DNA of 64,000 nt from Rhodosorus marinus CCMP1338 (GCA_029953675.1 JAMWBK010000011.1:372001-436000); one strand, 5' to 3'. Positions 444 through 29,143 are shown, counted from the stretch's first letter. Notes: generated by a model from the letters alone, not told the origin. A program made the numbers and translations.

Positions 444-2117
444 TCATGGCACCTTCCTCCCCACGACGCAGTAGTAGATTAATCGTCTGTTACCGTTTAA
501 GAACCCTCGTTCACATCGCCTTCCGGCACATCTCTTCCAGCCGCAAACTGGTGCTGGTAGTTTGCAATTTGGGCCGTTCGTTCCTTTGGGACATTTGCAA
601 ACCTTTCCAATCGTGATAATTTTGTCAACCTGTATGCCGATTTCTCTGATCACAGTGACGCCTCCCATGTACTCCACTATGATTCTCAAAACCTTAGTCT
701 GAGTCCCGAGCCCAAAGTGGAGCGTCTCCATGCATGCCTGAGAGTGTGACCGTCCGGGGGTTGAAACTCGCTTCATAAAGATTCCCCCGGGAGTCACCAC
801 TTTAACAACTGCGTACATGGGGCTCCTGTCCATTTTTGGGTTCATTGACGCGCAGGCAGGTCTGCCTACTCGGACGATGATGTAGTGCCGGTTACCCTTC
901 GGAGTCGTATTTCTGTACAAGTTCCAGGTCGAGTTTCGATTGCCGGACAAAATATCCGGCTTTCCGTCGTTGTCAAAGTCGAACGCAATCGAATTGTTGC
1001 CATCCTCCCACGGATTCTTGGATTGTGTCCCCACATTCCTCGTCTTCGTAAAGAACTTACCGCCGTTGTTGAGCAGCATCAGATCCTGCATACGCCGTTT
1101 CTTGTAGTCGGTGGTAAAAGTCACGTACAGATCGTCCCATCCATCGTTGTTGAAATCAGCAAACGTCGCGTGTCGATTGTGCCCGAGTATGTTGACACCC
1201 GTAGAATTGCTGACGTCAACAAAGATTCCGTTGCGATTTTCCAGCAGGATGTTCGGCATGTTATACACCCCGGGGTAGCCCCTCGTCATGTACAGATCAA
1301 AATCTCCGTCGCGGTCGTAGTCAAACTCCACGATGGACGTCACCAGCCTCATGTTAATGTTCGGCAATATCTTGTTGTTTTTGATGAACTTGAAACCCCC
1401 AGTACCCAAGTAGACGTCGACTCGTTCGATCATGAAAACCAGGATATCGATGTTCCCGTCGTTGTTAATGTCAACAATAGTGTTCGTGAATCCTGGTCGC
1501 ATTTCTAGTCCTGTGTTTTCTCGCAGACGAAATTTTCCATTCCCAAGGTTCTGGTAGACGTAATTTTTCCTTCCGCCGTCCAGCTTCTGCTGGTTGATGA
1601 ACATTAAATCAAGCTTGCCATCGTGGTTCAAGTCCACAAAGGCAGCCGTTCTCCCGCGCATCAGCTCGTTGCCGAATCCGTACTTGAACCCAGCGTCCCT
1701 CTTCCACGTGTGATTCTTCTTGACACTGTAGTAGATTGGAACTCCAGGTTTTTGCCCCCCACTTCCGCCAATCGTGAATACCACGTCCATGATTCCGTCG
1801 TCGTCCAAATCCCCAGCAGCGGTCCCGTGCACGTCGTGCATATAAAGGCGAGGATCCATGCTCTCAAACATGTTGTGCCCTTTCGACCAGTACCACTCCG
1901 CATTGTTCCCATGGTTGCTCAGGATCAAATCGTACCTGCCATCACAGTCCAGGTCAGCAATCGTCGCCCCATCGTACTTGCTCCCCTCTGGCCTTCGCCT
2001 GTGGTTCTCACTCAGCGTTTGAATACCCCTTGACGCCGAAACGTCCGCAAATTTTGGCCTTAAAGCCGCCTCAGAGGCCGCCACCAGCACCAACAGAACA
2101 ACAAAAACCAGCCGCAT
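444..2117 (-). CDS. Secreted FG-GAP/VCBS beta-propeller + ASPIC/UnbV (CRTAC1-like) protein, paralogue 1 (557 aa, intronless)
   Basis: Signal peptide MRLVFVVLLVLVAASEA; repeated DxD/NxDGxxD Ca-binding FG-GAP motifs (DLDCDGRYD, DLDDDGIMD, DLNHDGKLD, DINNDGNID, DYDRDGDFD, DFNNDGWDD, DFDNDGKPD); ASPIC/UnbV-type SQACMETLHFGLG; EGF-like CKCPKGTNGPNC. Confidence 0.9.
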   Translation of the reverse strand: MRLVFVVLLVLVAASEAALRPKFADVSASRGIQTLSENHRRRPEGSKYDGATIADLDCDGRYDLILSNHGNNAEWYWSKGHNMFESMDPRLYMHDVHGTAAGDLDDDGIMDVVFTIGGSGGQKPGVPIYYSVKKNHTWKRDAGFKYGFGNELMRGRTAAFVDLNHDGKLDLMFINQQKLDGGRKNYVYQNLGNGKFRLRENTGLEMRPGFTNTIVDINNDGNIDILVFMIERVDVYLGTGGFKFIKNNKILPNINMRLVTSIVEFDYDRDGDFDLYMTRGYPGVYNMPNILLENRNGIFVDVSNSTGVNILGHNRHATFADFNNDGWDDLYVTFTTDYKKRRMQDLMLLNNGGKFFTKTRNVGTQSKNPWEDGNNSIAFDFDNDGKPDILSGNRNSTWNLYRNTTPKGNRHYIIVRVGRPACASMNPKMDRSPMYAVVKVVTPGGIFMKRVSTPGRSHSQACMETLHFGLGTQTKVLRIIVEYMGGVTVIREIGIQVDKIITIGKVCKCPKGTNGPNCKLPAPVCGWKRCAGRRCERGFLNGNRRLIYYCVVGRKVP

Positions 2118-2984
2118 GTTTTCCTTTCAACCCCCGCCTCGCCTCCACCAGGGCGGGCTCATCACCCTACCCAACACCCTGCTCTCCCCCTCAACACCTC
2201 CTCTTCGCGCCAGCAACAACACCCATCTTCCCCCGCCCGTCCCCAACGCCCGTGAAATTCGTCTAAGGCCATCTAATATACCCCAATGGCACCTCAGTCT
2301 CTCTCACCGGAGTATTATACGGTCAATGACTACCCACCAGGCACTTTTTCTCGACTTGAATATCTTAAAAAAAGGATGAAACTAGACCTAAAAATTTTCT
2401 GCTCGACAGGCGGTACAATCAAAACAAAACATTGAGGAAAAAAAAAGTTAAAACGAAAGGGACAAAGTTTGCTCTGAGAAAACAGGGAGAATTTATTTAC
2501 CACGGGGGAGGGGGGGGGGTAAAATTTCGCCGTTCGTCACTATGGACACGGTAAGATTTTGCATTTTTTTATTTTTAGAACGACTTGTTGATCCAACAAC
2601 GGAAAAAAATTGTAGGGGAGAACTACCAGTACAGTTTGTCAAAATCTCGCTTGTCCCGATTTCTTGTGCCGATAATCCTACAAATAGATCAGAGAAGGAA
2701 TAATTTAGGATAGCTTAGACTTTTTCGTCTAAATGCGAAGAAGCAAACGTGGAAGGTCATCGGAATCGAGCAGCACAAAAAGTTAGAATAAAACTAATGG
2801 CAGAGTGAAAGTTGCATGCATTTCGACCCCATTTTGTAGGGGGCAAGTCACCGATAAACACTTTCGCAACTCGATCCTTAAAATATGTTTAGAAAGATAT
2901 ATGAAAATTTCGGTAGTGAAAGAGGGGGTAGGATGGTGAGAGGTAGTGGTGGACGAGGAGACACTCGTCAAACACACTTGGTCA

Positions 2985-3262
2985 TAGGCAGGACGAGACA
3001 GGCTGCCGTTTCGTTGTAGCGGTTGGTGTGTGTGTGTGTGTGTGTGACGATATTGAATAGGAGGAAGAGATACCGACAAGCCCTGCGCGAAAGCTGATTG
3101 GAGAGCCACGTGGAGCACTTCCGCTAGCTTGATGCTGAGCAGGACGACCCGTCTGCCGTTTTGTTCTTAGGGGTTTGGTGCTTGTGCATGTGTGTGTGTG
3201 TGTGTGTGCGATATCGAATAGGAGGAAGAGATAGAGAGATGCCCTGCGCGAAAGCTGATTGG
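2985..3262. repeat. Diverged tandem duplication (period about 161 bp), each unit carrying a (GT)n microsatellite
   Basis: GAATAGGAGGAAGAGATA at 3055 and 3216; GCCCTGCGCGAAAGCTGATTGG at 3080 and 3241; (GT)n in both units. Confidence 0.85.
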
Positions 3263-3862
3263 TATGACGACTCGTTTCTGCGCTCTTAAGGCGAAAATTA
3301 CTGAATTCCGAAAGCGTGGCGAGCCGGCGGAGCTCGTCGCAAAAGTTTCTTTCCTCGTCCTCACGGACAACTTCCGCATCCAAAAAAATTTGAGCCTAAT
3401 GAAAAAATACTATAATGAAAACCCCCCTTCCCTCCCTTCCCCCAACCCTTCGGTGGCGGCGGTACAGAGATGACCAGCATTACGCTCGAAGGCCTTTCGG
3501 CTTGCGGGAAGTGTAATCACTTCCACCACCACCTTTGCAACTCAAAGCCACCATTTACCAACCCTCGCTCCTCTCTCCGCCTGTTGCTCCTCACACCTCC
3601 TCGCTCCCCAATGAAAAAGTAGAACGGTATAAGCCAACCTCAGCAAATCGCTTGGGACAAACTCGGCATCAGTTCTACAAGGTGTCGCCCGTCTTGATCT
3701 GGCACTCCGGCTAAGGAACTCTCGCCACGTTCAATGTACAATAAAATGTGAAAAATTCCACCATCGCCGAAAACACGGTAATTACTTACTGTATAAATAC
3801 GCCTGTTTTCATTGATTATACCATTATAGCATAGAAAATAAGAACTTTTAGGTATCTTATGA

Positions 3863-4370: not shown

Positions 4371-5016
4371 GTCGTTGTTTAAGGAAAAAAAGGGTATTTG
4401 ATGGCCTATAATTAAAATGTTTTTCATAATATTGTACTGGACTTAACTTTTCTTTCATGAATCGATTAATAAATTATTATTTATTGCAGTATCAAACTGT
4501 TTAAAGTAATTTCAGAGTACAAGCGTTATTATTATAACAATTAAATAGAAAATCTATAAATAAAATTATTTAATAGGCTCTCCCTTTTATCTCAATTAAA
4601 TGAAATAAATCAGGGTACGCGTTCCTATGTATTGCATAGATTCTCCGACTTCGCAACTTTTGACAAGATCCATTTGGAATCGGATAGAACAAAATCAAGA
4701 ATTTAGAATGAGAATATCATTGGTTTCGTCACCGTGAATTGTCTTGCTTGATGCTTGTGGATTGGGAAAATGAGCTGAGCGACGGGAACGAGCCGTTTCT
4801 GCATGCTGTCTTTCAAGGGAGGCGGATCTATCTTCGGTTCACTTGCTCTCGCAGGGACCAAAGGTCGATCGCACTTTCTCTCTCAAGGTTTTTCTGCCTT
4901 GATCATTTCTGGTGTTCTTGTTCAGCGGCTGACGCTTCTATCCAAACCCGTACAAGTGGGTAACCCCTTAACGGGAGTTACGGAGTTACGGATTGGCACG
5001 GGAGTTCACCAATTGT

Positions 5017-5125
5017 ACGTGGGGATGTAGCTCTATAAGCTTGTGCTACCAGGGAAACTCATCGTCCTTACGTGGTGATGTAGCTCTAGAAGCTTGTGCT
5101 GCCAGGGAAACTGATTGTCCGTACG
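5017..5125. repeat. 53-bp tandem duplication
   Basis: GATGTAGCTCTA(T/G)AAGCTTGTGCT(A/G)CCAGGGAAACT at 5024 and 5077. Confidence 0.8.
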
Positions 5126-5630
5126 TCGTCGACACTGGTAGCTTCTTATTTATTTGGTCACCGACGCGTTTTAAAGGGAAGCAAAACGTATGACTAGAAA
5201 ACAATCCGTTTGCAGGTCATCTGAAAGACGCGTTCCCCATGTATCTTCAATCCACCTCAAAAACCTAAAATTATATCTACTTCTATGCACAAGTGTGAAT
5301 GTGAGCCCGGAGCCTGCATGCGACCCCTATACATATATATATATATATATATCGGGTCCGAGTAAGGCATTGCAAGAAGGAGGAGGAGACTGTCTAGCGA
5401 ATCGACTCCGAGAGTGCGGTTGCGTCTGTCATGGATGGATCTATCAAGGGGAGCAGTGTTGCAAACCGGTCTTTGAAATACTCATGGGATTTATTGATAC
5501 ACATAGCCATGGGAGTGGAAGGCAACCGATGAAGCACTTAGCCTTTATTGGGCAGCTACCTAATGTAGCGCATCACACGATCACTACGTACGCACTAACC
5601 AAACCTGGACTCCCTGTCCAAAAGTCTCAT

Positions 5631-7200
5631 CTAAATTCTACTTAGGGGAAATATCGGTCTATCTGCGCGATCTTTCTCGATCGCGTGCTCAACGAGCGCA
5701 GCATTGTGCTGCCACAAAATGCGGTTTAGTTGACCCCTCACCGACGATAGATGGGAGTCACGATCATGCAGGTGCGCGCTCGCCGTTCGAAGAAACTCAA
5801 GGCTTGCCTGGCCCATTCGACCAAATGTCTCAAAAATGAACGGCACAAGAACAACATCTCGGTTTTGCCCCCTCAGCACTTCCTTATAATGCAACGCCTT
5901 CGCTTGTTCGGCCTGTTTCGCAGCATACCCGCAGTTCCAGCTCGTATGTCTCAACTGATGCCTTTGAAGTGGCGATGTCACCATCACATCCACCACGTAC
6001 ACGCATCCGCTCGTCGGGTGTCGTGCAACGATGTCTGGGCGAATTCCAGACCCAGCAAAGAACCCCTGAGGCTCTACTTGTATCTCCGTGAAACTCCATA
6101 GGTGTAACCATCGACTCAGTTCCACCTTTAGCTCGTCGTGCCTCTTGGTTCGCATCCCTGATGAGGTCCTGCAGTGGTGCAGCCGCTGGATCCCACGCAC
6201 ATCGTGTGGTTGCTGGCAGACTGTGCACGTGTGTGACCGCCCTAGTCCTTGTAGTGGTAGCCCTAGAAGCATCCGCATGCTCCACAACATCTCATTTCGC
6301 GTCAACTGCCGCGGCCCTGTACTAGGACAGTCGCGTAGCCAGACCCCGCACCCCGTTCCAGATGCCGATCGGATCCTCGCCCGGTCTAGGTCGTCCAGTG
6401 TTGAATCTCCAGTAAGCTCCTCAAAGGCTTGTCGGTGACACTCTCGAGAGAGCGTTTTTTGGATCGGACCGTCAAACCTTTGGGTACCTCCTGTGTCTTC
6501 CGCTGTGCCTTCCGCCGAGTCCTCCAGCGGTTGCCAATCGGCCAGCCTCTGGATCCGTGCACTGGTCGTCGCTGGCAAACGTCGTCTAGTTGCGCGACTT
6601 GCCTCCACCAGTTGCCAAGCAAGTCCATCGGTTGTCCATCCAAGTCGCACCCGTGGCAGCGATTCTCCTTGTGCTGCCGCAATACACTCCTGGGAAAGCC
6701 GTTCGAGGTAGCGTGATTCAGTGGTGTTCTCTTGCAGGCTTTGTTTCCACCCTGCATGGAAGGCAACTGGTTGAATTCTCGTGTGCGTGGCAAAGCCAAG
6801 TCCTCCCCATCGACACGGGAATCGAATCTGTTTCTCAACCGCTGCAGCCTCACGTGCGGTGATATCCTGGTGTTGACATAGGCCTCCACACAAGCCTTCA
6901 AGCTCCGAGAGGGTGATCACGTCCGCCTCGCGGGCAACGGTACGTCCAAGGGGGGTACGCCAGCCCACGTGTATGATAATCGAGCCTTGTGCCTGCGCAG
7001 TACCGAAAGAGGGCCAGCTTGACTTGGAGTTCAGCATCGGGGAGTCCCTGAATCGATTTTACCAGGTTCGCATGTCGCGTTTGAACTTGGACCAGCACCG
7101 CTGTCTGAACATGCCGTCGTCCTTGTGACCATCCTCCGAGAAAGGCGGTTATGAGGGTTGGTTGGAATAGCAGAGATGCTACATGACAAGAGATCCTATT
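5631..7200 (-). mobile_element. 5'-truncated, frameshifted CRE/SLACS-clade non-LTR retrotransposon (RT C-terminus, zinc finger, restriction-like endonuclease)
   Basis: ALFRYCAGTRLDY (ORF 6898-7278), then after a frameshift QIRFPCRWGGLG, RIRSASGTGCGVWL, MRMLLGLP, CTVC..HHC..RHDEL, RPDI..VDVMV, LVPFIFETFGRMG (ORF 5631-7037); these match CRE/R2-type REL-endonuclease elements. Confidence 0.8.
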
Positions 7201-7302
7201 CAACGCTGGTGCTGAGAACAACCGTCCGGAAACAAGAATACTAGCAAACAGCTGTAGGTTCCTGACACGTATGCGCACGTAGTTACCTTCAGATGTACAT
7301 CT

Positions 7303-7398
7303 GTACCCTCAGAGGTATTGCCTGCGCACAGAGGTACCCTCAGAGGTTTTGTCTGCGCACAGAGGTACCCTCAGAGGTTTTGTCTGCGCACAGAGGTA
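7303..7398. repeat. 31-bp minisatellite, three copies, next to the truncated 5' end of the retroelement
   Basis: Unit GTACCCTCAGAGGTTTTGTCTGCGCACAGAG. Confidence 0.9.
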
Positions 7399-8282: not shown

Positions 8283-10064
8283 ATGGGATGGAGAGGTTCA
8301 GTTCTGGTTGTGGTATTAGGCCTGATCTTGGTCCTGGCGGAGTGCGCGAAACGACCCTTTTTTGAGGATGTTTCGCATCGGAAGGGCATACAGAGCCTCG
8401 AGGAGAACCACAGACGGGTGCCACTTGGGAGCAAATACGACGGCGCTACAATTGCCGATCTAGATGGAGATGGCTGGTATGACTTGGTACTTTCCAACCA
8501 TGGGAACAACGCTGAATGGTACTGGTCGACGGGCGACGGATCTTTCGAGTTTGAGGATCCACGTTTGCGATATTTTGATGTGCACGGAACGGCAGCTGGA
8601 GACGTTGATAACGATGGAAAAATGGAGGTAATAATTGCCATTGGAGGGTCTGCGGGTAGCAAGCCTTCAACTCCAGTCCTCTACACTCAGGGCGCAAACG
8701 GAAGAATCAGCAGGACCCGTGGCGAGGGGCACGGACTTGACGAGATGGCCATACGCGGAAGAAGTGTTAGTTTCGTGGATATCGACAACGACGGCGACCT
8801 TGATCTGATATATACGAACAAGCGTGAAGAGGGAACGATGAAAGCACATTTGGTGTACGAGAACACTGGCGAAGGGCAGTTTGTACTTCGGAAAAACACG
8901 GGTATTGAGTCTGCAGACGCATGGAAAATCGTGATTTTCGACATCAACGAGGACGGCAATGCAGATATACTCTTCTTCACAAGTTTCGGGCCAGCGGAGC
9001 TCTACTTGGGGACCGGTGACTTCAAGTTTACAAGAGACCATGATACTCTACCCTTGGATCTTTTGGAGTACGCACATTGCATCGCCATTATGGACTATGA
9101 CAACGATGGTGATCTTGACCTGTTCATCGTGCGTGGGTCGGATACACCTAGGACGCGAAAGCCCAACACTCTCCTCGAGAACAGAGGAACGGACGGGTAC
9201 ACAGACGTTGCGGCAGAGAAAAAATTGAGCGTCCTTACAAACTACACGAGCTACTTCGTAACTTACGGTGACTTCAATAATGACGGCTACATAGACTTGT
9301 ACGTCACTATCAGCACCGACTATACTGGTCCTAGACAGAAAGACCTGCTGTTTGTCAACGAAGCGGGCATTTACTTTAGAGAGGTGAAGGACCACGGAAT
9401 CAACGCGAGTGGTCTGCCAGAGGACGGAAACAGCGCGATTGCGTTTGATTTTAACATGGATGGAAATATGGACCTATTGACTGGAAACAGAAACTCCACG
9501 TGGAGATTGTACGAGAATAAGACGGATCTCACCAGGAGGCACTATCTGTTCGTTAGAGTAGGCAGACCGCCAGCAACGGAGCTGGACCCCGGACTGGATC
9601 GAAATCCCCTTGGTGCGGTGGTGAGAGTTTACACTGGGAGAGGTGAAGTCTTTACGAGAGAGGTGGGCACCCCAGGGAGATCTCACGCACAGGCGTACAT
9701 GGACACGCTTCACTTTGGCCTTCGGAAGAATGAAGCAATCGAAAAGATTGTGGTAAGGTATATGGGAGGGGTTACGGTTGTGCGCCGGCGAGGTATTAAG
9801 GTAGACAAGATAGTGGTCGTTGGCCGATTTTTCCATTGTCCTCCTGGACTAACTGGTAGAAACTGCGACCGTGTGCCAGTTTGCGACAGAGAAAATATAT
9901 GCCAAGGTCGCCCCTGCGATAATGTTTTCTACGCCAACTGTGAGGGGTGTGGAGGTTACTTTTGTTTGGCACCTGGTGAAGAGCCAAAAGCGCGGACAGG
10001 TGAAAAATGCCCGAGCCCGTGTGACTCTCATGAGTTTTCCACAACGAAGGGGAATAAGAAATAA
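8283..10064 (+). CDS. Secreted FG-GAP + ASPIC/UnbV protein, paralogue 2 (593 aa, intronless)
   Basis: Signal peptide MGWRGSVLVVVLGLILVLAECA; seven FG-GAP-like DxxxDG motifs; TPGRSHAQAYMDTLHFGL; CPPGLTGRNC and Cys-rich tail. Confidence 0.9.
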   Translation: MGWRGSVLVVVLGLILVLAECAKRPFFEDVSHRKGIQSLEENHRRVPLGSKYDGATIADLDGDGWYDLVLSNHGNNAEWYWSTGDGSFEFEDPRLRYFDVHGTAAGDVDNDGKMEVIIAIGGSAGSKPSTPVLYTQGANGRISRTRGEGHGLDEMAIRGRSVSFVDIDNDGDLDLIYTNKREEGTMKAHLVYENTGEGQFVLRKNTGIESADAWKIVIFDINEDGNADILFFTSFGPAELYLGTGDFKFTRDHDTLPLDLLEYAHCIAIMDYDNDGDLDLFIVRGSDTPRTRKPNTLLENRGTDGYTDVAAEKKLSVLTNYTSYFVTYGDFNNDGYIDLYVTISTDYTGPRQKDLLFVNEAGIYFREVKDHGINASGLPEDGNSAIAFDFNMDGNMDLLTGNRNSTWRLYENKTDLTRRHYLFVRVGRPPATELDPGLDRNPLGAVVRVYTGRGEVFTREVGTPGRSHAQAYMDTLHFGLRKNEAIEKIVVRYMGGVTVVRRRGIKVDKIVVVGRFFHCPPGLTGRNCDRVPVCDRENICQGRPCDNVFYANCEGCGGYFCLAPGEEPKARTGEKCPSPCDSHEFSTTKGNKK

Positions 10065-12362: not shown

Positions 12363-14114
12363 ATGGGACGGGGTCTGGGTCTAGGGGTGGCCTTGGTTCT
12401 GGTGGGTTTAGTGTGCTGTGCAAAGTTACCACTGTTCAGGGACGTGTCGCAAAAGAACGGTATTCAGGGCCTCGAGGAAAATCACAGACGCGTGCCTCAT
12501 GCGAGCAAGTACGACGGGGCTACGATTGCAGATCTGGATGGTGATGGTTTTTATGATATGGTGCTTTCCAACCATGGGAATAACGCGGAGTGGTACTGGT
12601 CAACGGGTCAAGGCTCTTTCGAATCGGCGGATCCACATATGCGACATTTTGATGTGCACGGGACGGCGGCTGCGGATATTAATAACGATGGCAAAATGGA
12701 GGCCATCTTGACGATTGGAGGATCCCGGGGCTCAAAACCTTCAGTTCCGATGTGGTTCACTTTCGACGCCAGCGGAAAGATCGAGAGGACCCGTGGTGAG
12801 GAGTATGGACTTGGACAGGAGAGTATGCGCGGAAGAGTGGCGAGTTTTGTGGACATCGACAACGACGGAGACCTTGACTTGATATATACCAACAAGCCAA
12901 TACCTGGAGAGTTGAGAGTGCACCTGGTGTACGAAAACACTGGTGACGGCCAATTCGTGCTCAGAGAAGATACTGGTATTGAGACCCTAGAGGTGTACAA
13001 GATTGTAATGATGGATATCGACGAAGACGGCAATACAGACATACTTTTCTTCCACAGTTACAGAGAATCAGAGCTCTATATGGGGACAGGCGGCTTTAAG
13101 TTTATTAGAAATGAGAATTTGCTGCCATTGGAACTACTGCACTATGCCCATTGCATAGCGGTTATGGACTATGATAACGACGGTGATCTTGATCTGTTCG
13201 TTGTACGCGGAAGAAACGCGCCGGCTCGAGCTGAACTTGAAAACCCCTTCCTTGAGAATACCCTCATAGAGAACAGAGGAAACGGGGTTTTCGTTAATGT
13301 TGCCGAGGAGAAGGGTTTGAACGTGCTGACAGGGTACCGGCCCTACCACGTAACTTACGGCGACTTCAACAATGACGGCTACCTAGATCTGTACGTCACC
13401 ATCAGCACAGAGTTTCGCTCAGCTCGGAAGAATGACCTGCTCCTACTCAACGAAAAGGGAGTCTCCTTCAAGAAGGGTTTGTACCACGGAATCCGAGCGG
13501 AGGGGCTTCCAGAGGACGGAAACAGTGCTATTGCATTTGACTTTAACATGGATGGAAAGGTTGAACTTTTGACTGGGAATAGAAACTCTACGTGGAGATT
13601 GTACGAAAACATGACTGATCTTAGCGATAGAAGCTACCTCACCGTAAGGGTTGGGAGACCTTCCGCGACGGAGTTGGACTCTGGACTTGATCGAAACCCC
13701 CTGGGAGCCGTAGTCAAAGTCTACAATTGGAGAGGAGAAGTGTTCACGAGACAGGTGGCGACCCCGGGTAGGTCTCACGCGCAAGCGTATATGGACACGC
13801 TTCACTTCGGCCTCATGCATACTGCAAAAATCGACAGAATTGTTGTAGAATATACGGGAGGAATCACCCTCGTTCGTCAAGGAAATAGTCGGATAAACAG
13901 TGAGGTGATCATCGGACGATTCTTCCATTGCCCGCCAGGACTAACTGGCAGGGACTGTGACCGCAAGCCTGTTTGCGACGTGACAAGCCGGTGCAATGGG
14001 CGTGGTTGCGAACGTGTTTTCTACTCCAAATGTGAAGCGTGCGGATCTTACTTTTGTCTGGCACCTGGAGAAGAGCCCCTTGCGGAGCCGCACAGAAGGC
14101 CTGGAGCGCTCTGA
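12363..14114 (+). CDS. Secreted FG-GAP + ASPIC/UnbV protein, paralogue 3 (intronless; ATG at 12363 preferred over the upstream TTG)
   Basis: MGRGLGLGVALVLVGLVCCA signal peptide; same motif set as paralogues 2, 4 and 5. Confidence 0.9.
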   Translation: MGRGLGLGVALVLVGLVCCAKLPLFRDVSQKNGIQGLEENHRRVPHASKYDGATIADLDGDGFYDMVLSNHGNNAEWYWSTGQGSFESADPHMRHFDVHGTAAADINNDGKMEAILTIGGSRGSKPSVPMWFTFDASGKIERTRGEEYGLGQESMRGRVASFVDIDNDGDLDLIYTNKPIPGELRVHLVYENTGDGQFVLREDTGIETLEVYKIVMMDIDEDGNTDILFFHSYRESELYMGTGGFKFIRNENLLPLELLHYAHCIAVMDYDNDGDLDLFVVRGRNAPARAELENPFLENTLIENRGNGVFVNVAEEKGLNVLTGYRPYHVTYGDFNNDGYLDLYVTISTEFRSARKNDLLLLNEKGVSFKKGLYHGIRAEGLPEDGNSAIAFDFNMDGKVELLTGNRNSTWRLYENMTDLSDRSYLTVRVGRPSATELDSGLDRNPLGAVVKVYNWRGEVFTRQVATPGRSHAQAYMDTLHFGLMHTAKIDRIVVEYTGGITLVRQGNSRINSEVIIGRFFHCPPGLTGRDCDRKPVCDVTSRCNGRGCERVFYSKCEACGSYFCLAPGEEPLAEPHRRPGAL

Positions 14115-14194
14115 TTCTGATACTCAAGACAACGGACACCGAAGGAGACTGGAACCTCTCCAACGACAGTTTTTCGTCAAGGGCCATGAGCCAG

Positions 14195-14451
14195 CTCCGG
14201 TCGGGTTGCAACGCTTCCACGCACGAAGGAAGGCTATCACGTCGTGGTTTGCACAAAATGATATATACCAATGAGAGGCGTTTTGGACCGAGGGTTTAAC
14301 GTCGGGTTTTGATGACATGCGGGCGCCTCCGGTCGGGTTGCAACGCTTCCCCGCACGAAGGAAGGCTATCACGCCGTGGTTTGCACAAAATGATATATAC
14401 CAATGAGAGGCGTTTAGGACCGAGGGTTTAACGTCGGGTTTTGATGACATG
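14195..14451. repeat. Near-identical 132-bp tandem duplication just downstream of paralogue 3
   Basis: CTCCGGTCGGGTTGCAACGCTTCC...GGGTTTTGATGACATG at 14195 and 14327, with only a few substitutions. Confidence 0.9.
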
Positions 14452-15497: not shown

Positions 15498-15503
15498 GAG
15501 ATG

Positions 15504-15689
15504 CCGATGCTTGGGTCTGAAGCTTGCGGGTTGGTTGGGCATTGGATCCGCCGCGGAAAAAGGCTGCTCAGGGTGCTTACCGTGTTCGATGAGAAGCCGA
15601 TGCTTGGGTCTGAAGCTTGCGGGCTGGGTTGCGCATTGGATCCGCCGCGGAAAAGGCTGCTCAGGGTGCTCACCGTGTTCGAGAAGAAG
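15504..15689. repeat. 93-bp tandem duplication abutting the eIF4A fragment
   Basis: CCGATGCTTGGGTCTGAAGCTTGCGGG...GGATCCGCCGCGGAAAA...GGCTGCTCAGGGTGCT at 15504 and 15597. Confidence 0.9.
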
Positions 15690-17908: not shown

Positions 17909-19333
17909 ATGGGTTTACTGCGGGTTGTCGGGCCCAACAAGGCCATGGTCATTTCCGGCAGAACGGGAAGAAGAGGCCAAAAGGATGCAAGGATTCTCGT
18001 GGGAGGAAGAGCTGTCGTCTGGCCTCTTCTGGAGAGATGTGACCTGCTGTCCCTGGAATTGCGAACGATTCAAGTAGAGTCCAACCAGTCCATGACGGTC
18101 AAGGGAGTGTCCGTGAACATCATTGGCGTTTGTCAAGTGAAAGTATCAGGATACTCAGAGGTAGATGGCTCTCTCGTAAGAGACGAGAACGCTATTAGAC
18201 TTGCCGCTCAGCATTTTCTCGGGGCGACAGACGATGAAATTGACAATTCTATTCGCCAGACTATGGAAGGACATCAGAGGGCCATTCTCGGGAGTCTTTC
18301 CGTAGAGGAAGTCTATCGCGATCGTCGTGCATTTTCAGAGTCTGTCAAGCGGGTTGCCACCACGGACATGCGGAATATGGGTCTAGAGATTGTCTCATAC
18401 ACTATATCGCATATACGCGACAGTGAAGGCTACCTTGAGGCTCTAGGCGTCATGCAAACCCAGGTTGTCAAGCGCGAAGCTCAAGTGGCCAAAGCAAAGA
18501 ATACAGCTGAGGCGGCTAAGCTGTCAGCTGATTATGACCTGCAGGCCACTGTAGAGATTGACAAGGCGGAGAAGAGGAAGGCGGAATCCAGGCGCAGTGT
18601 AAGCTTGACTCAAGCAGCCATGAAAAAGGAAGTTGGCACAGCTGAAGAAGTGGCACTGAGGGCGAGGGAACTAGAGAAGGAAGTTCTCCTGCAAGAGATC
18701 GTCGCGAATAAAACCAAGCAAGCTACAAAGGAGGCCGAGGAGCATGTCAAGGTCGTAGAGCTGGAGGCAAAGCAAGAAAGGATTCGAATGGAGAACCTTG
18801 CGCTGGCTGAAGGAAACGCTCTCCTTCTGAAGAGAGAGAAAGACGCTGCCGCTCTCCGTGTCTACGCGGAGGCAGAAGCAGATCGCATCCTCGCGACCGG
18901 CCGTGCTGAGGCAGAAGCTCTTAGAAAAAGGTATGAAGTTGAGTTGGAGATGCTGAGGGGCAAAGCAGAGGCCTACCGACAGTTTGGAGAGGCGGCAATT
19001 GCAGTCCAGGCGATCGAGGCTCTACCAAATATCGCCGAAGCGATCGCAAATCCGTTGTCACAGACCGAAAAGATGGTCTTCATTGGTGGAGGAGACGGAA
19101 ATGCATCGTCGAGCTTTATGAAGGACATTTCCAAGGGCATTTCAACTGTTACGGAGACTGTAAATGCGATGACAGGAGTCAACATCAACAAGATCCTTCA
19201 GAACTACGCCAACACAATGGATCAAAGCAACACTGGTGGAGTCCAGAAGGCGATTATGGACGTCGCCCAAAAGAACCCCGAGTCCGCGGTCACGGACTTA
19301 TCGGGCTCCGCGGATATTGAACCACTCGACTAG
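17909..19333 (+). CDS. FLOT: Flotillin (SPFH/band 7 domain + flotillin coiled coil), 474 aa, intronless
   Basis: GPNKAMVISG, LSLELRTIQV, MEGHQRAILGSLSVEEVYRDRRAFSESV, DMRNMGLEIVSYTI, YLEALG, AEAE/EA-rich coil, EAIANPLSQTEKMVFIG; ATG at 17909. Confidence 0.9.
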   Translation: MGLLRVVGPNKAMVISGRTGRRGQKDARILVGGRAVVWPLLERCDLLSLELRTIQVESNQSMTVKGVSVNIIGVCQVKVSGYSEVDGSLVRDENAIRLAAQHFLGATDDEIDNSIRQTMEGHQRAILGSLSVEEVYRDRRAFSESVKRVATTDMRNMGLEIVSYTISHIRDSEGYLEALGVMQTQVVKREAQVAKAKNTAEAAKLSADYDLQATVEIDKAEKRKAESRRSVSLTQAAMKKEVGTAEEVALRARELEKEVLLQEIVANKTKQATKEAEEHVKVVELEAKQERIRMENLALAEGNALLLKREKDAAALRVYAEAEADRILATGRAEAEALRKRYEVELEMLRGKAEAYRQFGEAAIAVQAIEALPNIAEAIANPLSQTEKMVFIGGGDGNASSSFMKDISKGISTVTETVNAMTGVNINKILQNYANTMDQSNTGGVQKAIMDVAQKNPESAVTDLSGSADIEPLD

Positions 19334-21388: not shown

Positions 21389-23443
21389 ATGGATATGGGA
21401 CGGAGATCGTTTTTGGGTCTGTTGGGCCTGGTGCTGGTGGGTTTTGTGTCTTGTGCGAAGCGAGCTGTGTTTGAGGACGTCTCGATTGCGAAGGGCTTGC
21501 AGAGTAGGGAGGAGAACCACAAACGCGTGCCGGCTGGGAATAAGTACGGCGGGGCTACTGTCGCAGATCTGGATGGTGATGGTTGGTACGATTTGGTGCT
21601 TTCCAACCACGGGAACAACGTGGAATGGTACTGGTCAACTGGTCAAGGCTCTTTTGAATCGGCGGATCCCCACATGCGAAGTTTTGATGTGCACGGGAGC
21701 GCGGTTGCAGATATTAATAACGATGGGAAAATGGAGGCAATCATGGCGATTGGAGGTTCCATGGGGTCGAAACCTTCAATCCCGGTTTGGTTAACTTTTG
21801 ACTCGAAGGGGAAGGTCAAGAAATCCCGTGGAGAGGAGTACGGACTTGGCCAGGATAGAATGCGCGGGAGGGTAGCCAGTTTTGTGGATATTGACAACGA
21901 TGGGGACCTTGACTTGATACAAACGAACAAGAGGGAACCTGATAAGCTAGAAGCTCATCTTGTATACGAAAACACGGGTGACGGCCAATTCATACTCAGG
22001 GCAGACACGGGCATCGAGGGGGTAAAAGCGTATCAGGTTGTGCTTTTTGACATCAACGAAGATGGCTATACGGATATCCTTTTCTTCTCCTCTTGGGGGG
22101 AAACCGATCTCTACTTGGGGACTGGAGACTTCAAGTTTATCAGAGATGAGGATACGCTGCCTTTGGAGCAACTGCACTACACGCACTGTGTAGCGGTCAT
22201 GGACTATGATAATGATGGCGATCTTGATCTGCTCGCTGTACGTGGAAGAAGAGCACCTCCTTTAGCTGGACTAGAGGACAACCTCATTGAGAACATCCTC
22301 CTTGAGAACAGGGGGAAAGGGGTGTTCGTGAACGTCGCAGAAGAGAAGCGATTGAGCGTCTTGACAGACCACACGCCCCGCCATGTAACTTACGGCGACT
22401 TCAACAATGACGGCTACTTGGATCTGTTTGTGACTATTAGCACGGCACATCGCGACACTCGCCATAATGACGTGCTATTGCTCAACGAAAAGGGTCTCTA
22501 CTTTAAGACAGCGGAGGACTACGGAATCGAAGTTGCAGGGCTTAGAGAGGACGGAGACAGCGGCTTTGCGTTTGACTTTAACATGGATGGAAATGTGGAC
22601 TATTTAACTGGGAACGTTAACTCTACATGGAGATTATACGAAAATAAAACCGATCTCCGGAGGAGGCGACATCTGTTTGTGAGAATCGGGAGACCTCCGG
22701 CGTCAGAGCTGGACCCGGGACTGGATCGAAACCCCCTTGGGGCTGTCGTCAGGGTTTACACTGGGGGAGGCGATGTGTTCACGAGACAAGTGGAAACCCC
22801 AGGGAGATCTCACGCACAGGCGTACATGGACACGCTTCACTTCGGCCTTATGAATAAGAAGAACGTTAAAAGAATTGAAGTGGAGTACACCGGCGGAGTA
22901 ACGCTTGTACGTGAGGGAAACATCACGTTAGATAGCGAGGTGATCGTTGGACGGTTCTTCCATTGCCCCACTGGACTGACTGGGAAAGAATGTGACCGTG
23001 TACCTGTTTGTGACGTGACAAACCCGTGCAATGATCGTGGCTGCGAGCGTGTTTTCTACAGAAAATGTGAAGAATGTCGGAGCTACTTTTGCCTACCACC
23101 GGGTGAAGAGCCCTTCATAGAGACAGAATCAGAGACACCGGCAGAATCCCCAACGCCAACGGAAGCACCTACGGACACAGCTACGGAGGGGCCTACAGAC
23201 ACTGCAACGGAGGGGCCTACTGACACTGCAACGGAGGGACCTACTGACACTGCAACGGAGGGACCTACTGACACGGCAACGGAAGGACCTACAGACACGG
23301 CAACGGAGGGACCTTCAGGCACTGCAATGGAGGGACCTACAGACAGTGTAACGGAGGGACCTACAGAACTCACAACGGGCACACCCACCGTTTCTCCAAC
23401 GGAGGTGCCCGCAACACCTACGACGGAGATCAGAATGCCCTGA
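21389..23443 (+). CDS. Secreted FG-GAP + ASPIC/UnbV protein, paralogue 4, with a mucin-like Thr/Pro/Glu tail (684 aa)
   Basis: Signal peptide MDMGRRSFLGLLGLVLVGFVSCA; same motifs; C-terminal (TATEGPTD)n. Confidence 0.9.
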   Translation: MDMGRRSFLGLLGLVLVGFVSCAKRAVFEDVSIAKGLQSREENHKRVPAGNKYGGATVADLDGDGWYDLVLSNHGNNVEWYWSTGQGSFESADPHMRSFDVHGSAVADINNDGKMEAIMAIGGSMGSKPSIPVWLTFDSKGKVKKSRGEEYGLGQDRMRGRVASFVDIDNDGDLDLIQTNKREPDKLEAHLVYENTGDGQFILRADTGIEGVKAYQVVLFDINEDGYTDILFFSSWGETDLYLGTGDFKFIRDEDTLPLEQLHYTHCVAVMDYDNDGDLDLLAVRGRRAPPLAGLEDNLIENILLENRGKGVFVNVAEEKRLSVLTDHTPRHVTYGDFNNDGYLDLFVTISTAHRDTRHNDVLLLNEKGLYFKTAEDYGIEVAGLREDGDSGFAFDFNMDGNVDYLTGNVNSTWRLYENKTDLRRRRHLFVRIGRPPASELDPGLDRNPLGAVVRVYTGGGDVFTRQVETPGRSHAQAYMDTLHFGLMNKKNVKRIEVEYTGGVTLVREGNITLDSEVIVGRFFHCPTGLTGKECDRVPVCDVTNPCNDRGCERVFYRKCEECRSYFCLPPGEEPFIETESETPAESPTPTEAPTDTATEGPTDTATEGPTDTATEGPTDTATEGPTDTATEGPTDTATEGPSGTAMEGPTDSVTEGPTELTTGTPTVSPTEVPATPTTEIRMP
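23177..23368 (+). repeat. Coding 24-bp minisatellite, eight units (TATEGPTD)
   Basis: AC(A/T)GC(A/T)ACGGA(G/A)GG(G/A)CCTAC(A/T)GAC repeated. Confidence 0.9.
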
Positions 23444-24146: not shown

Positions 24147-24362
24147 GTTGGACCGGAAGGACGACTAGGAGCAAGTGAAAGATCGACTTTTTCCTTGCTC
24201 ACCATTGCATAACATAAGCCGAGTATTTATATAGTTTGTTGGAGGCTGGCCACTAAGTGAGCGACGACCGCAGTAAAACGCACTACTTTCCTGAGAGCTC
24301 CAAAGTTGGGACCGGAAGGACGACTCGGAGCAAGTGAAAGATGGACGTTTTTCTTGCTGACC
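24147..24362. repeat. Two diverged 57-bp direct repeats
   Basis: GTTGG(G)ACCGGAAGGACGACT(A/C)GGAGCAAGTGAAAGAT at 24147 and 24305. Confidence 0.8.
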
Positions 24363-25399: not shown

Positions 25400-27127
25400 A
25401 TGGGTTGCAGAAGGTCATTTTTAGCTCTGTTCTTAGGGTTAACCCTGGGACTGGTCGATTTTGCGGCTTGTGGGGTACCTCGGATACGTTTTAAGGATGT
25501 CTCGCGTTCGAAGGGCATCCAGAGTCTCGCAGAGAACCACAGACGCGTGCCAAAATGGAGCAAATATGATGGCGCTACGATTGCGGATCTCGATGGAGAT
25601 GGTTGGTATGACATGGTACTTTCCAACCATGGGAACAACGCAGAATGGTACTGGGGAACTGCCAATGGTTCGTTCAAATCGGTGGATCCACGGATGAAGT
25701 TTTTTGACGTGCACGGGACTGCTGCTGCGGACATTGACAACGATGGAAAAATGGAGGTCATCATGACGATCGGAGGTTCTGGGGGTTCTCGACCTTCGAC
25801 TCCTGTGCTGTTCAGCTTTAACGACAGCAGAAAGCTGAAGAAGAGCCGCGGTGAGAAGTACCGACTTGGCAAGGAGCGCATGCGTGGAAGGGTGGCGAGT
25901 TTTGTGGATGTCGACAATGATGGAGACCTTGACTTGATTTATACCAACAAAAGAGAGCCTGGAAAGCGAAAAGCACACCTTGTATATGAAAACTCTGGTA
26001 ATGGCAGATTCGTGCTTAAGAAAGATACAGGAATAGAATCCGTAGACGCGTACACGATAGAGCTTTTCGATATCAACGAAGACGGCAATATGGATATAAT
26101 TTTCTTCTCCAGATATGGGGCGGCCCATCTGTACTTGGGCACTGGAGACTTCAAATATGTTGAAGACAAAGATACGCTGCCTTTGGATTTGCTATCCTAC
26201 GCACACAGCGTAGCGGTTATGGACTATGATAATGATGGGGATCTTGATCTGCTCATTTTACGTGGGAGACGCTCGCCTAGAGGCAAATTGGACAGCATTC
26301 TTCTTGAGAACACTGGAAAAGGTCGATTCGTGAGCGTTGGACAGGATAAGCGATTGAGCACACTCACAGAGTACAGGCCGTACCATGTAACATACGGTGA
26401 CTTCAACAATGACGGCTACATAGATCTGTACATCACGATCAGCACAGACTATGCTGCGCCTAGGCAGGATGACCTACTCATGGTAAACAAAAAGGGACTC
26501 CAGTTCAAGTTGGTGGAGGACCACGGAATCCGAACTCGAGGTCTTCCAGAGGACGGAAACAGCGCGTTCGCATTTGACTTTAACATGGACGGAAATCTGG
26601 ACCTGTTGACGGGGAACAGAAACTCTACCTGGAGACTGTATGAAAACAAAAGTTACCTGGGCAATAGACACCATCTGTTCGTTAGAGTCGGGAGACCTCC
26701 AGCAACGGAGCTGGACCCTGGACTCGATCGAAACCCGCTTGGTGCTGTAGTCAAGGTTTTCACTCGTGAAGGTGGAGTGTTCACAAGACAGGTAGCTACT
26801 CCTGGAAGGTCTCACGCCCAGGCATACATGGACACGCTGCACTTTGGACTTGGAAAGCATAAAAAAATCCACAGAATTGTAGTGGAGTACACTGGAGGAA
26901 TAACTCTTGTACGTCAGCATCGCATTAACGTAGACGGGGAAGTCATCGTTGGACAATTCTTCCGATGCGGTCCCGGACTAACGGGCAAGAAATGCAACCG
27001 AAAACCCAGTTGCAGCATAAAGAACCGCTGCAATGGTCGGGGCTGCGAGCGTATTTTCTACACAAAGTGCAAAACGTGCAGGAACTATTTTTGTTTGGCT
27101 GCTGGAGAAGAGTCCGGCCCTAACTGA
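25400..27127 (+). CDS. Secreted FG-GAP + ASPIC/UnbV protein, paralogue 5 (Lys/Arg-rich; ATG at 25400)
   Basis: MGCRRSFLALFLGLTLGLVDFAAC signal peptide; same motif set. Confidence 0.9.
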   Translation: MGCRRSFLALFLGLTLGLVDFAACGVPRIRFKDVSRSKGIQSLAENHRRVPKWSKYDGATIADLDGDGWYDMVLSNHGNNAEWYWGTANGSFKSVDPRMKFFDVHGTAAADIDNDGKMEVIMTIGGSGGSRPSTPVLFSFNDSRKLKKSRGEKYRLGKERMRGRVASFVDVDNDGDLDLIYTNKREPGKRKAHLVYENSGNGRFVLKKDTGIESVDAYTIELFDINEDGNMDIIFFSRYGAAHLYLGTGDFKYVEDKDTLPLDLLSYAHSVAVMDYDNDGDLDLLILRGRRSPRGKLDSILLENTGKGRFVSVGQDKRLSTLTEYRPYHVTYGDFNNDGYIDLYITISTDYAAPRQDDLLMVNKKGLQFKLVEDHGIRTRGLPEDGNSAFAFDFNMDGNLDLLTGNRNSTWRLYENKSYLGNRHHLFVRVGRPPATELDPGLDRNPLGAVVKVFTREGGVFTRQVATPGRSHAQAYMDTLHFGLGKHKKIHRIVVEYTGGITLVRQHRINVDGEVIVGQFFRCGPGLTGKKCNRKPSCSIKNRCNGRGCERIFYTKCKTCRNYFCLAAGEESGPN

Positions 27128-27448
27128 GTAGAGGCAAAGCATGGGTTGCTGCATTTACAGCGTACACTAACCCAGAACTTTTCAAGTGGCCAACTGATCC
27201 GAGTTCGTGCTGTGAGCTCTGTTCGACTATCCGATGTCCATGCACGAACGGCAGGTCGTAGGCGTAGCCAGTGGAATAGGGTGCAAGAAGTCGCGAGACC
27301 GGTACGGCCGGGGGACGTGGATTGACGGAATATTTTATTTGCCGTAGCTTAAATATAGTTATTTCAAATATACCTTCGAAGTCTCCATTCCGGGGAAGCC
27401 CTCCCTTTCCTCCACCTCAGCGCTCACCCGAACACTGATGGTGAGGGC

Positions 27449-29143
27449 TTACTTGCTATCATTGTCGATGGTGATGGGGCAGAACCTGCTCTGTCCAATG
27501 TTCTTGTTGACAACCTTTTCACAAGTTTCGTGCGCGAGGCACTCTTCTACTTTGCACGGGTGTATCCGGCGTGCACACTTGGCCCCAGTCCATAGTCCTC
27601 TACACCTATAGTACAACCCGCTAACTATCACCCGGTTTACTGCAATGTTCCCATTCCGAACGACGACGATCCCATTCGTATAACGAATCATGATTCTTTC
27701 GAGGTTGGAGCACCTGCCAAGGCCAAAATGGAGTGTATCATAGTAGCTCTGGGAGTGACTTGCGCCTGGCGTGATCGTTCTTTGTACAAACGTCCGGCTA
27801 TCACATCTGAGCCGGACAGTCGCTCCTATAGGACTGCGGTTCCATTTGGGAAGGAACCGACCGATTCTTGGAAATCCAACCCTTATGATCACCCAGTTGT
27901 TCCTCATTGTTTGAGAAAGGTTCCTGAACAAATGCCATGATCCGTGTTTGTAGCCCACCAGAAGATCCAACCTGCCGTCCAGGTCGTGATCAAATGCGAT
28001 AGCGCTGTCTCCGTCTTCATCCAAACCCTTCCTATCCAGTCCTACCCACCTCTTCCTGTTAAAGGTCCCGTTCCCCTTGTTCATGAGGAGGATGTCCTGC
28101 TTGTTTGGACCGCGGTACCACGTCATCTGAGATATGTACAAATCCGCGTAGCCATCATTGTTGAAGTCGCCGCAGGTCACGTGATAGTGCTTCCCACCCG
28201 TGGGAATCTTGGCTTGTACACTGACGTTTTCGTAAATGTACCCCTTCTTCTTTCGCAGGAGGACGTCATCGAACTGCTTCTTGTTTTTGCCCCTGGCTAT
28301 GTACAAGTCCGGCATTCCATCACCGTCAAAGTCTAGCTCACAGGCACACCGAGCACCCCTCATCTTGTGTGCATCTGGAATCACGCCAATCGCCTTCTTG
28401 AAGCCGAATCTTCCTGTTCCTTCCCATAACTGGACGGAATCATCTGTCATCAATAGCACATCCATAAATCCATCCTCGTTGAAGTCGATCAGATGAAACC
28501 AAGCGGCATTCACATGTTCAAATCCAGTCTTCCGTACTCTAAATGTCCCGTCACCCTGGTTCTCATAGAACAGATGAATCGGTTGGTCGTCAATACCAGG
28601 AATCTTCCGGTTAACATAGATAAGGTCCAAGAAGCCGTTCCCAGTGGTATCCATGAAACCGCAAGATCTTCCCCGGACGTATTGGTCATTGAGTCCCCAT
28701 TTAGCCCCATCGACAGATATGTTGAATCCGTTGTTCTCTCCACTCTCCAACACCATCCCAGTTCCCGGGTTCGTGCCCGCGGCGCCTCCCCTCGTGATCA
28801 CCGCGTTGAGATGCCAACTGTTGGACATGTCCGCGATCGCAACTCCGTGGATGTCTCTTCGATACAATCCTGGACTCTTGAACCTGTACTTTGTATTCAT
28901 TTTCGACCAGTAGAAATCCAATCCGTCTCCGTGGTTTGACATCATAAGGTCGTACCTTCCATCGCGATTCATATCTGCTACGGCCGGCGACCAGTACGCA
29001 TTCTCGCTGCTGACATTCCGCGCATCCGGGATCGTCTTGGCAAGAATCCCAGCCTTTTCTGAGATATCTACAAACCGTGGAACCAGCAGAGATCGGATTT
29101 GAAGTATCAAAAGACACACAACAAAAGCCTTCAAGATATTCAT
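27449..29143 (-). CDS. Secreted FG-GAP + ASPIC/UnbV protein, paralogue 6 (most divergent, 564 aa)
   Basis: MNILKAFVVCLLILQIRS signal peptide; DMNRDGRYD, DFNEDGFMD, DFDGDGMPD, DFNNDGYAD, DHDLDGRLD; TPGASHSQSYYDTLHFGLG; CRGLWTGAKC. Confidence 0.88.
   Translation of the reverse strand: MNILKAFVVCLLILQIRSLLVPRFVDISEKAGILAKTIPDARNVSSENAYWSPAVADMNRDGRYDLMMSNHGDGLDFYWSKMNTKYRFKSPGLYRRDIHGVAIADMSNSWHLNAVITRGGAAGTNPGTGMVLESGENNGFNISVDGAKWGLNDQYVRGRSCGFMDTTGNGFLDLIYVNRKIPGIDDQPIHLFYENQGDGTFRVRKTGFEHVNAAWFHLIDFNEDGFMDVLLMTDDSVQLWEGTGRFGFKKAIGVIPDAHKMRGARCACELDFDGDGMPDLYIARGKNKKQFDDVLLRKKKGYIYENVSVQAKIPTGGKHYHVTCGDFNNDGYADLYISQMTWYRGPNKQDILLMNKGNGTFNRKRWVGLDRKGLDEDGDSAIAFDHDLDGRLDLLVGYKHGSWHLFRNLSQTMRNNWVIIRVGFPRIGRFLPKWNRSPIGATVRLRCDSRTFVQRTITPGASHSQSYYDTLHFGLGRCSNLERIMIRYTNGIVVVRNGNIAVNRVIVSGLYYRCRGLWTGAKCARRIHPCKVEECLAHETCEKVVNKNIGQSRFCPITIDNDSK

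Follow-up and report, generated by a model that had tools for sequence, protein, structure and literature searches.

What is the long row of propeller-protein genes in the genome of a unicellular red alga, where did it come from, and what might its products do? These questions are raised by a 64,000-nucleotide stretch of the Rhodosorus marinus CCMP1338 genome (GCA_029953675.1, JAMWBK010000011.1:372001-436000; hereafter the window), in which an earlier note, written from the sequence with no knowledge of its origin, had recognised six tandem paralogues within 29 kb and supposed an algal-type genome, which that of this red alga indeed is. The proteins are unstudied members of the known FG-GAP plus UnbV/ASPIC (CRTAC1) superfamily, and databases already annotate them automatically as such; a literature search found no published description of a red-algal FG-GAP/UnbV family. 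New here are the true extent of the array, which holds 12 copies, the spread of the family over four red-algal classes, its sister link to bacterial proteins associated with polysaccharide utilisation loci (PULs), and a candidate site that the algal and bacterial proteins share.

An array of twelve genes

All six genes of the window, here called g1 to g6, are real: they are uninterrupted open reading frames (ORFs) of 557-684 amino acids (aa), each lying where the earlier note had put it. However, the array runs past the window edge. Public gene models and ORFs reveal six extra family genes, gL1 to gL6, directly to the left of the window and on the same strand as g1 (contig positions 350110-371538, corresponding to 6338-19975 of L001 and 10001-15643 of L002; L001, L002 and L004 are extracts of contig JAMWBK010000011.1). 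The family array therefore comprises 12 copies in 51 kb (contig positions 350110-401143) and not six in 29 kb, with 11 copies intact and one frameshifted. Two tandem Cupin_1 (germin-like) genes (L002 16023-19181) form its left border, and g6 forms its right one.

The copies fall into subclades A, B and C, whose relationship to gene order is described below. The first copy of the window, g1 (444-2117, minus strand; 557 aa, subclade B), combines a predicted signal peptide, seven FG-GAP blades, a UnbV/ASPIC domain and a Cys tail (CKCPKGTNGPNC...), and its public model is intronless (L001 3759-5432). Subclade A consists of the four plus-strand copies: g2 (8283-10064; 593 aa; locus tag NDN08_007103), whose Cys tail is encoded by 9819-10061 and which was the copy modelled structurally; g3 (12363-14114; 583 aa), listed as an ORF that begins at an upstream TTG (12348); g4 (21389-23443; 684 aa), which has an extra C-terminal Pro/Thr-rich repeat; and g5 (25400-27127; 575 aa), to which protein P0006 is a 100% match at 25400-27124. 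The last copy, g6 (27449-29143, minus strand; 564 aa, subclade C), is convergent with g5, the two being separated by 321 bp.

In the left flank, gL1 (559 aa) and gL2 (L001 9860-11533; NDN08_007100) belong to subclade B, gL4 (572 aa) and gL5 (581 aa) to subclade C, and gL3 encodes 558 aa. The annotated gL2 product is 510 aa long and starts from an internal Met; an in-frame ATG 141 nt upstream gives an intact protein of 557 aa in which the signal peptide and the ENHRR segment are regained. The remaining copy, gL6 (L002 13986-15643), carries a one-base frameshift that splits its models into 174 and 348 aa, and it reads ...FDFNGNGWMTFCL followed by a stop where its paralogues have ...GxLDLxxxN. 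It is either a pseudogene or the result of a long-read indel error.

Architecture and fold of the proteins

The architecture that had been proposed for the six window copies, namely a signal-peptide-like N-terminus, about seven Ca2+-binding FG-GAP blades, an ASPIC/UnbV domain and a Cys-rich tail, is present in every one of them. Each matches the Pfam family FG-GAP_3 (E values from 8e-28 to 9e-40; 4e-32 in g1) as well as UnbV_ASPIC (PF07593), for which the scores range from 24.5 bits in g1 to 34.5 bits against a gathering score of 23.4. Strict D-x-[DN]-x-[DN]-G motifs number seven in each of g1-g5 and five in g6. A Kyte-Doolittle window scan found a hydrophobic, signal-peptide-like N-terminus and no other transmembrane segment in all window copies, which also share a C-terminal stretch with 6-10 Cys residues; two N-glycosylation sequons, NSTW and NKT, are kept in most copies. 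In g4 only, the Cys residues lie upstream of a Pro/Thr repeat, encoded by a 24-nt tandem repeat (23157-23367; 8.8 copies according to Tandem Repeats Finder) that yields about nine PTDTATEG units at the C-terminus. This repeat looks like a mucin-like stalk and is probably O-glycosylated. The N-terminal signature that had been suggested as a subfamily mark is specific in its ENHRR part, which occurs in seven of the 12 copies, whereas the remainder is mostly the first blade as found throughout the family. A match to the Tc-toxin TcdB mid/N region (PF12256) was set aside as generic repeat similarity, since it scored 16.8-17.6 bits, below the cut-off of 24.8, and covered one FG-GAP-like stretch of about 25 residues. 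For the family, an NCBIfam search of the window proteins returned just a sub-threshold match to an XAC2610-related repeat.

An AlphaFold2 model of g2, built from an alignment of 96 sequences, has a mean predicted local distance difference test score (pLDDT) of 89.3 and a predicted template modelling score of 0.91. It contains seven four-stranded blades with an N-terminal strand closing the propeller, a beta-sandwich at about residues 420-513 that corresponds to the UnbV/ASPIC domain, and a small folded tail at residues 528-575 (pLDDT 75-93). The first Foldseek match of this model is the crystal structure of murine CRTAC1 (9etn_A; E=6e-26, template modelling (TM) scores 0.68/0.73), and the next-best matches are integrin alpha heads, which align over the propeller only at TM scores of about 0.4. 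A profile of the family searched against the Protein Data Bank (PDB) also finds 9etn_A (E=2e-47), and PVL-type propeller lectins are among the further matches. Because the structural and the profile search both point to 9etn_A, homology to CRTAC1 at the superfamily level is established, in agreement with the CRTAC1-like architecture recognised before. Two closer identifications were ruled out. The proteins are not metazoan CRTAC1 orthologues, as mouse CRTAC1, the sole animal sequence in the tree described below, falls outside the clade of red algae and marine bacteria (199/200 bootstraps) and is 18% identical. They are not integrin alpha subunits either, as they have no transmembrane segment beyond the signal peptide and their C-terminal half consists of the UnbV domain and the Cys tail.

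The Cys-rich tail had been described as an EGF domain, and an EGF-like Cys module is indeed present, but not a canonical one: a Pfam search of the tails alone detected no EGF domain even at E<=10. The tails follow the pattern C-x-x-G-x-x-G-x-x-C, then further Cys pairs. When 1.84 billion representative proteins were screened with a profile of six tails, the tail was found behind an FG-GAP/UnbV body only in Rhodosorus family members, and the other matches were proteins of many EGF repeats (E values from 8e-12 to 1e-3, at profile positions 5-35). Judged from its sequence pattern, the tail appears to be a degenerate EGF-like disulfide module that is specific to Rhodosorus. Florideophyte and bangialean homologues stop right after the UnbV domain; thus the likeness of the Rhodosorus proteins, with their tail, to the domain order of CRTAC1 was probably acquired independently.

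Old duplicates under purifying selection

Identity between copies ranges from 33 to 71%. The ratio of nonsynonymous to synonymous substitution (Nei-Gojobori dN/dS) is 0.12-0.21, with dS at least 1 and saturated; therefore the duplicates are old and under purifying selection. The subclades follow physical neighbourhood: A is made up of g2-g5, B of g1, gL1 and gL2, and C of gL4, gL5 and, from the far end of the array, g6, and adjoining copies are nearest relatives within the array. Serial local duplication with one rearrangement would give such a pattern. The array arose from a single intronless gene that was duplicated locally again and again.

Complete transcripts from another Rhodosorus strain in MMETSP include one-to-one orthologues of g2 (P0002; 81% identical over residues 1-585, ungapped), g3 (P0004; 85%), gL1 (92%) and g6 (P0271; 92% at 99% coverage), and a 572-aa transcript, P0311, is by its length alone probably the orthologue of gL4. 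The duplications are therefore older than the divergence of the two strains, and the genes are transcribed with their ORFs unbroken. Together with the degree of divergence and the purifying selection, these transcripts dispel the concern of the earlier note that the copies might be untranscribed or duplicated in assembly.

All 12 family genes are single-exon; for the six window copies, the public models span 3 x aa + 3 nucleotides. An intron with which g2 is publicly annotated (9753-9879; 127 nt, GT..AG, with the frame shifted) was rejected as a mis-prediction, as the residues concerned are conserved in all paralogues and kept in transcript P0002. Six non-family models follow the array on its right; three of them (CN_hydrolase, B-box and RBFA) span more DNA than their coding length, and DRMBL probably does too, so the picture of intronless copies next to an intron-rich right half is borne out. 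The 31.2-Mb genome of R. marinus CCMP1338 holds 24,821 introns in 8,392 genes, or about three per gene (PMC10250338). Intronless genes outside the family also occur in the neighbourhood, namely a 173-aa gene, a 468-aa gene and a flotillin gene. The contrast is real, but since all 12 copies owe their structure to a common ancestor, it counts as a single event.

A family of red algae and marine bacteria

Outside Rhodosorus, the collinear best matches are red-algal. Pyropia yezoensis, P. vietnamensis, Compsopogon caeruleus and Chondrus crispus carry the family; Porphyra umbilicalis has several near-identical genes, two of them on one scaffold (BU14_0479); Gracilariopsis chorda has at least six; and Agarophyton chilense has at least ten, among which two are adjacent and tail to tail (L091 6657-9863). 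Homologues in other red-algal classes are essentially single-exon ORFs; one Agarophyton copy may contain a short intron, its gene range exceeding its coding length. In three homology searches, no other named eukaryote ranked above the bacterial matches. Thus, in each of the four red-algal classes sampled, represented by Florideophyceae, Bangiales, Compsopogon and Rhodosorus, the family has several copies, which are sometimes clustered. Multigene families are described as rare in red-algal genomes. The lineage-specific expansion that had been postulated holds for the Rhodosorus copies, all 12 of which form one clade with their MMETSP orthologues (100% bootstrap), but not for the family itself, which is multicopy across red-algal classes and clustered in Porphyra and Agarophyton. 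Peculiar to Rhodosorus are just the expansion to 12 genes and the tail.

Neighbour-joining trees of 149 sequences were computed over 477 trimmed columns; three distance corrections were used, and 200 bootstraps. Each red-algal class forms its own clade with 100% bootstrap, and a split between all red-algal and marine-bacterial 'CRTAC1 family' proteins on one side and other bacteria plus mouse CRTAC1 on the other was recovered in 199/200 bootstraps. Mean identity to the Rhodosorus copies is 33% for marine bacteria, 31-32% for other red algae, 26% for other bacteria and 18% for CRTAC1. All marine-bacterial members examined carry an insertion of 110-140 aa between blades 5 and 6, which is absent from red algae and from remoter bacteria. 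The simplest reading is one ancient exchange between a marine bacterium and an early red alga, in either direction, followed by independent expansions in each class; any transfer is older than the divergence of the red-algal classes covered here. The suggestion that horizontal transfer seeded this particular array finds no support in GC content, overall and at third codon positions (GC3), which is equal in the copies and in neighbouring genes, or in the occurrence of the family in several red-algal classes. A recent transfer, in particular, is ruled out by this fully ameliorated composition and by the presence of the family in four classes.

A candidate site on the propeller

A set of twelve residues, or of eleven positions if the glycine-rich loop is counted apart, is kept at close to 100% in Rhodosorus, in Bangiales, in Florideophyceae and in 49 proteins of marine bacteria; in g2 numbering, it comprises K51, H73, D99, H101, G121, G122, G125, P128, R158, G159 and R160. 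Another 46 bacterial homologues vary at these positions, and mouse CRTAC1 has different residues there (L, Y, N, I ... A). Assignment of secondary structure by DSSP on the g2 model puts every invariant residue into a 4-1 or a 2-3 loop of blades 1-3. Loops of these two kinds make up the top, ligand-binding face of integrin-type propellers, and the DxDxDG Ca2+ motifs, one per blade, are in the 1-2 loops on the opposite face. By this analogy, the invariant residues would lie on the top face of the propeller.

Gene neighbourhoods of the bacterial relatives

Gene context was inspected in seven close bacterial loci; of 80 loci listed in a wider genome scan, three were close. In Reichenbachiella carrageenanivorans, the homologue is accompanied by a porphyranase, a sulfatase, members of glycoside hydrolase (GH) family GH3 and a GH43-like type, and an Aldedh and MR_MLE pair, which we read as the catabolic pair for 3,6-anhydrogalactose. 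The homologue of Agaribacter marinus lies between an Agarase_CBM protein and a GH2 enzyme, and that of Namhaeicola litoreus has GH16 and GH2 genes upstream and sulfatase and aldehyde dehydrogenase genes downstream. In Tamlana agarivorans, it belongs to a SusC/SusD PUL with GH43, GH2, a flavin adenine dinucleotide (FAD) oxidoreductase, an aldehyde dehydrogenase and coenzyme A (CoA)-transferases, and in Gayadomonas joobiniege a GH2 enzyme and a Pel9A-like protein are encoded nearby. The other two loci are taken up below.

A set of genes also recurs around the bacterial homologues (L007, L010, L013 and L092). It consists of RhaT, GH43, GH2, an FAD oxidoreductase, an aldehyde dehydrogenase, two CoA-transferase III genes, a solute-binding protein and a sulfatase, with a porphyranase, GH16 or agarase-CBM gene in some loci. 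This set looks like an uncharacterised conserved PUL module.

Possible functions of the array

The earlier note had conjectured an adhesion or lectin-like role; the conserved top-face site and the bacterial neighbourhoods now point to a glycan-directed one. The explanation that we favour, and to which as a whole we give an even chance, combines the duplicated array of proteins with a CRTAC1 fold, the ancient exchange with marine bacteria and a proposed function. According to this last part, the proteins would be exported to the wall or mucilage with its sulfated galactan, where the galactan would be bound or chemically modified through the cationic, His-rich top-face site (K51, H73, D99, H101, the G121-P128 loop and R158-G-R160). 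Ca2+ would stabilise the propeller, the Cys tail or the Pro/Thr stalk would tether or space it in the matrix, and paralogue divergence would tune specificity. This function, in which an extracellular, Ca2+-stabilised propeller would engage the anionic galactan matrix, either binding or organising it or acting on it enzymatically, is a tentative proposal that we hold with somewhat less than even confidence. More doubtful is a wider proposal, in which the red-algal and the PUL-encoded bacterial proteins would be one family that recognises or modifies sulfated galactan, with which the alga would build or remodel its wall and the bacteria would take it apart. An early passage of the gene between the two partners would be part of this picture, the invariant residues would be a new carbohydrate site, and the sulfotransferase-like paralogues described in the next section would belong to the same wall-biosynthetic neighbourhood.

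Several points weigh against a galactan-directed function. We know of no member of the clade of red algae and marine bacteria for which a ligand or activity has been shown, and CRTAC1, the only studied relative, is described as a protein-binding factor of the extracellular matrix. The association with glycan genes comes from a small sample of seven loci, in which Marinimicrobium has a fucosidase only and Flammeovirga has no glycan genes, and gene adjacency in eukaryotes is weak evidence of common function. Secretion is predicted by a hydrophobicity heuristic, and the expression support comes from a strain other than CCMP1338. As for the shared history, the trees are neighbour-joining trees on simple distances over a repeat protein, red-algal monophyly receives 31-42% bootstrap, and, because red algae are without the bacterial insertion, the algal genes are sister to the marine-bacterial crown group and not nested inside it.

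One may argue that the proteins are instead CRTAC1-like matrix or adhesion proteins, which act through protein-protein contacts (cell-cell, cell-substrate or matrix organisation) and have no carbohydrate ligand. CRTAC1 is, after all, the best structural match, integrin alpha propellers come next, and an EGF-like tail and a mucin-like stalk are typical of extracellular matrix proteins. However, CRTAC1 is 18% identical and belongs to another clade, the invariant top-face residues are absent from it, the bacterial sister proteins are encoded in glycan-utilisation loci, and Rhodosorus is unicellular. We consider this alternative unlikely; if it were true, the array would be an ordinary lineage-specific gene-family expansion.

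Uniformly low dN/dS (0.12-0.21) and a putative site that is invariant rather than hypervariable sit badly with a secreted recognition or defence family, whose members would be lectin-like sensors of bacteria or of wall fragments in an arms race with bacteria that degrade algal polysaccharides. In addition, the proteins have no signalling or membrane-anchoring domain. Such a role would fit the independent multicopy expansions in every red-algal class, the FG-GAP-type propeller lectins (PVL) among the PDB profile matches, and the homologues in bacteria that attack red-algal walls, and we regard it as rather improbable.

A further alternative concerns gene structure: the genes may lack introns because a spliced mRNA was retroposed in the Rhodosorus lineage and the new copy then duplicated in tandem, and not owing to a bacterial origin. 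Single exons in 12 of 12 copies are striking in a genome with about three introns per gene, but they amount to one evolutionary event, intronless neighbours are common (the flotillin, 173-aa and 468-aa genes), the homologues of other red algae are essentially single-exon too, and the nearest relatives are bacterial. Traces such as poly-A or target-site duplications would not be expected at such an age. Retroposition is not required to account for the array, and we give this explanation little chance. Lastly, an artefact of assembly duplication, bacterial contamination or dead copies, as the gL6 frameshift and the odd intron of the public g2 model might suggest, is very nearly excluded by copies that are 33-71% identical and hence not duplicates, by a 1.44-Mb algal contig with intron-containing eukaryotic genes around the array and the same GC3, and by 11 intact ORFs under purifying selection for which orthologous transcripts exist.

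The favoured explanation, a propeller directed at the galactan matrix, also gives the family its wider interest. Few proteins of red-algal wall biosynthesis or remodelling are known. Since the proteins are apparently secreted, constrained, expanded in each class and closely related to proteins encoded in agar and porphyran loci, the family is a testable wall-active candidate in the algae and a candidate new PUL component in the bacteria.

Neighbouring genes and other features of the window

Three unrelated ORFs lie within the array. One is an apparently unannotated ORF of 468 aa (5631-7037, minus strand; GC 0.56) between the divergent g1 and g2, whose locus tags appear to be consecutive. It has tandem repeats on either side (5015-5126 and 7303-7398), no match in Pfam, NCBIfam or the PDB, and is possibly a transposable-element remnant. 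Another, between g3 and g4, is the intronless flotillin gene (Band_7 + Flot; 17909-19333, plus strand; L004 6521-7945), which encodes 474 aa and is unrelated to the family. Intergenic tandem repeats lie between g3 and the flotillin gene, at 14195-14451 (132 nt) and 15498-15689 (93 nt), each with about two copies of 92-97% identity.

The third is a 444-aa gene (L001 15520-16854) between gL3 and gL4 in the left half of the array. It is a paralogue (48%, E=1e-116, by tblastn against the window) of the 468-aa gene, which lies 4.4 kb to the right of the array (33530-34936, plus strand); the products of both look like type II membrane proteins. The 468-aa protein has a weak Sulfotransfer_3 match (E=0.014) and no match in a PDB search, and the sole confident part of its single-sequence AlphaFold2 model (pLDDT 35) is a helix at residues 6-32. 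Candidate motifs for binding of 3'-phosphoadenosine 5'-phosphosulfate (SHAGST...L and NYRRD..KR) can be discerned in both paralogues, which may be Golgi carbohydrate sulfotransferases. Searches of the window for tRNA genes and Rfam families gave no matches.

Comparison with known systems

Another multigene family of the red-algal wall is galactose-6-sulfurylase II, known from Chondrus, which is described as secreted, confined to red algae and active on sulfated galactan (PMC7359372, PMC8307928); its published family alignment has 263 positions (PMC7359372). According to reviews, galactose-6-sulfurylases represent the only characterised step of red-algal wall biosynthesis or remodelling (PMC8307928). 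Chondrus has 12-16 galactose-6-sulfurylase II genes, as opposed to one named match to the present family. The purified enzyme is reportedly about 32 kDa, against about 60 kDa for the Rhodosorus proteins, and this comparison of reported sizes makes it unlikely that the two families are the same.

Close counterparts are the other red-algal 'ASPIC/UnbV domain-containing proteins', which are collinear single ORFs of about 500-610 aa, multicopy and endowed with the same conserved site. They differ in being 29-32% identical to the Rhodosorus copies, in having no Cys tail and, in Bangiales, in an N-terminal extension, and no 12-gene array was seen among them. The closest non-algal relatives are the marine-bacterial 'CRTAC1 family' proteins of Reichenbachiella, Tamlana, Agaribacter, Gayadomonas, Namhaeicola, Flammeovirga and others, whose identity is 33-36% over the trimmed alignment, compared with 38-40% when the N-terminal half is taken. 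They share the propeller and UnbV core with the same invariant residues; in contrast to the Rhodosorus proteins, they have the insertion between blades 5 and 6, often C-terminal Big_2 domains, and no EGF-like tail.

Among better-known propellers, integrin alpha heads and fungal PVL-type lectins are similar in having seven blades with DxDxDG Ca2+ loops, but the Rhodosorus proteins are without the thigh and calf domains, the transmembrane segment and the beta-subunit partner of integrin alpha. Vertebrate CRTAC1/ASPIC/LOTUS (9etn, murine) comes nearest in overall design, as this secreted protein likewise consists of an FG-GAP Ca2+-binding propeller, a UnbV/ASPIC sandwich and a small Cys-rich module. 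It has no equivalents of K51, H73, D99, H101 and R158, and the family profile matches one segment of its propeller twice, which suggests another blade count. CRTAC1 is also usually single-copy, in contrast to the array of 12. Moreover, no EGF_CA domain can be recognised in the Rhodosorus tail, which the other red-algal members do not have. The comparison illustrates the inter-kingdom spread of the CRTAC1 fold, behind which an EGF-like module was apparently added independently.

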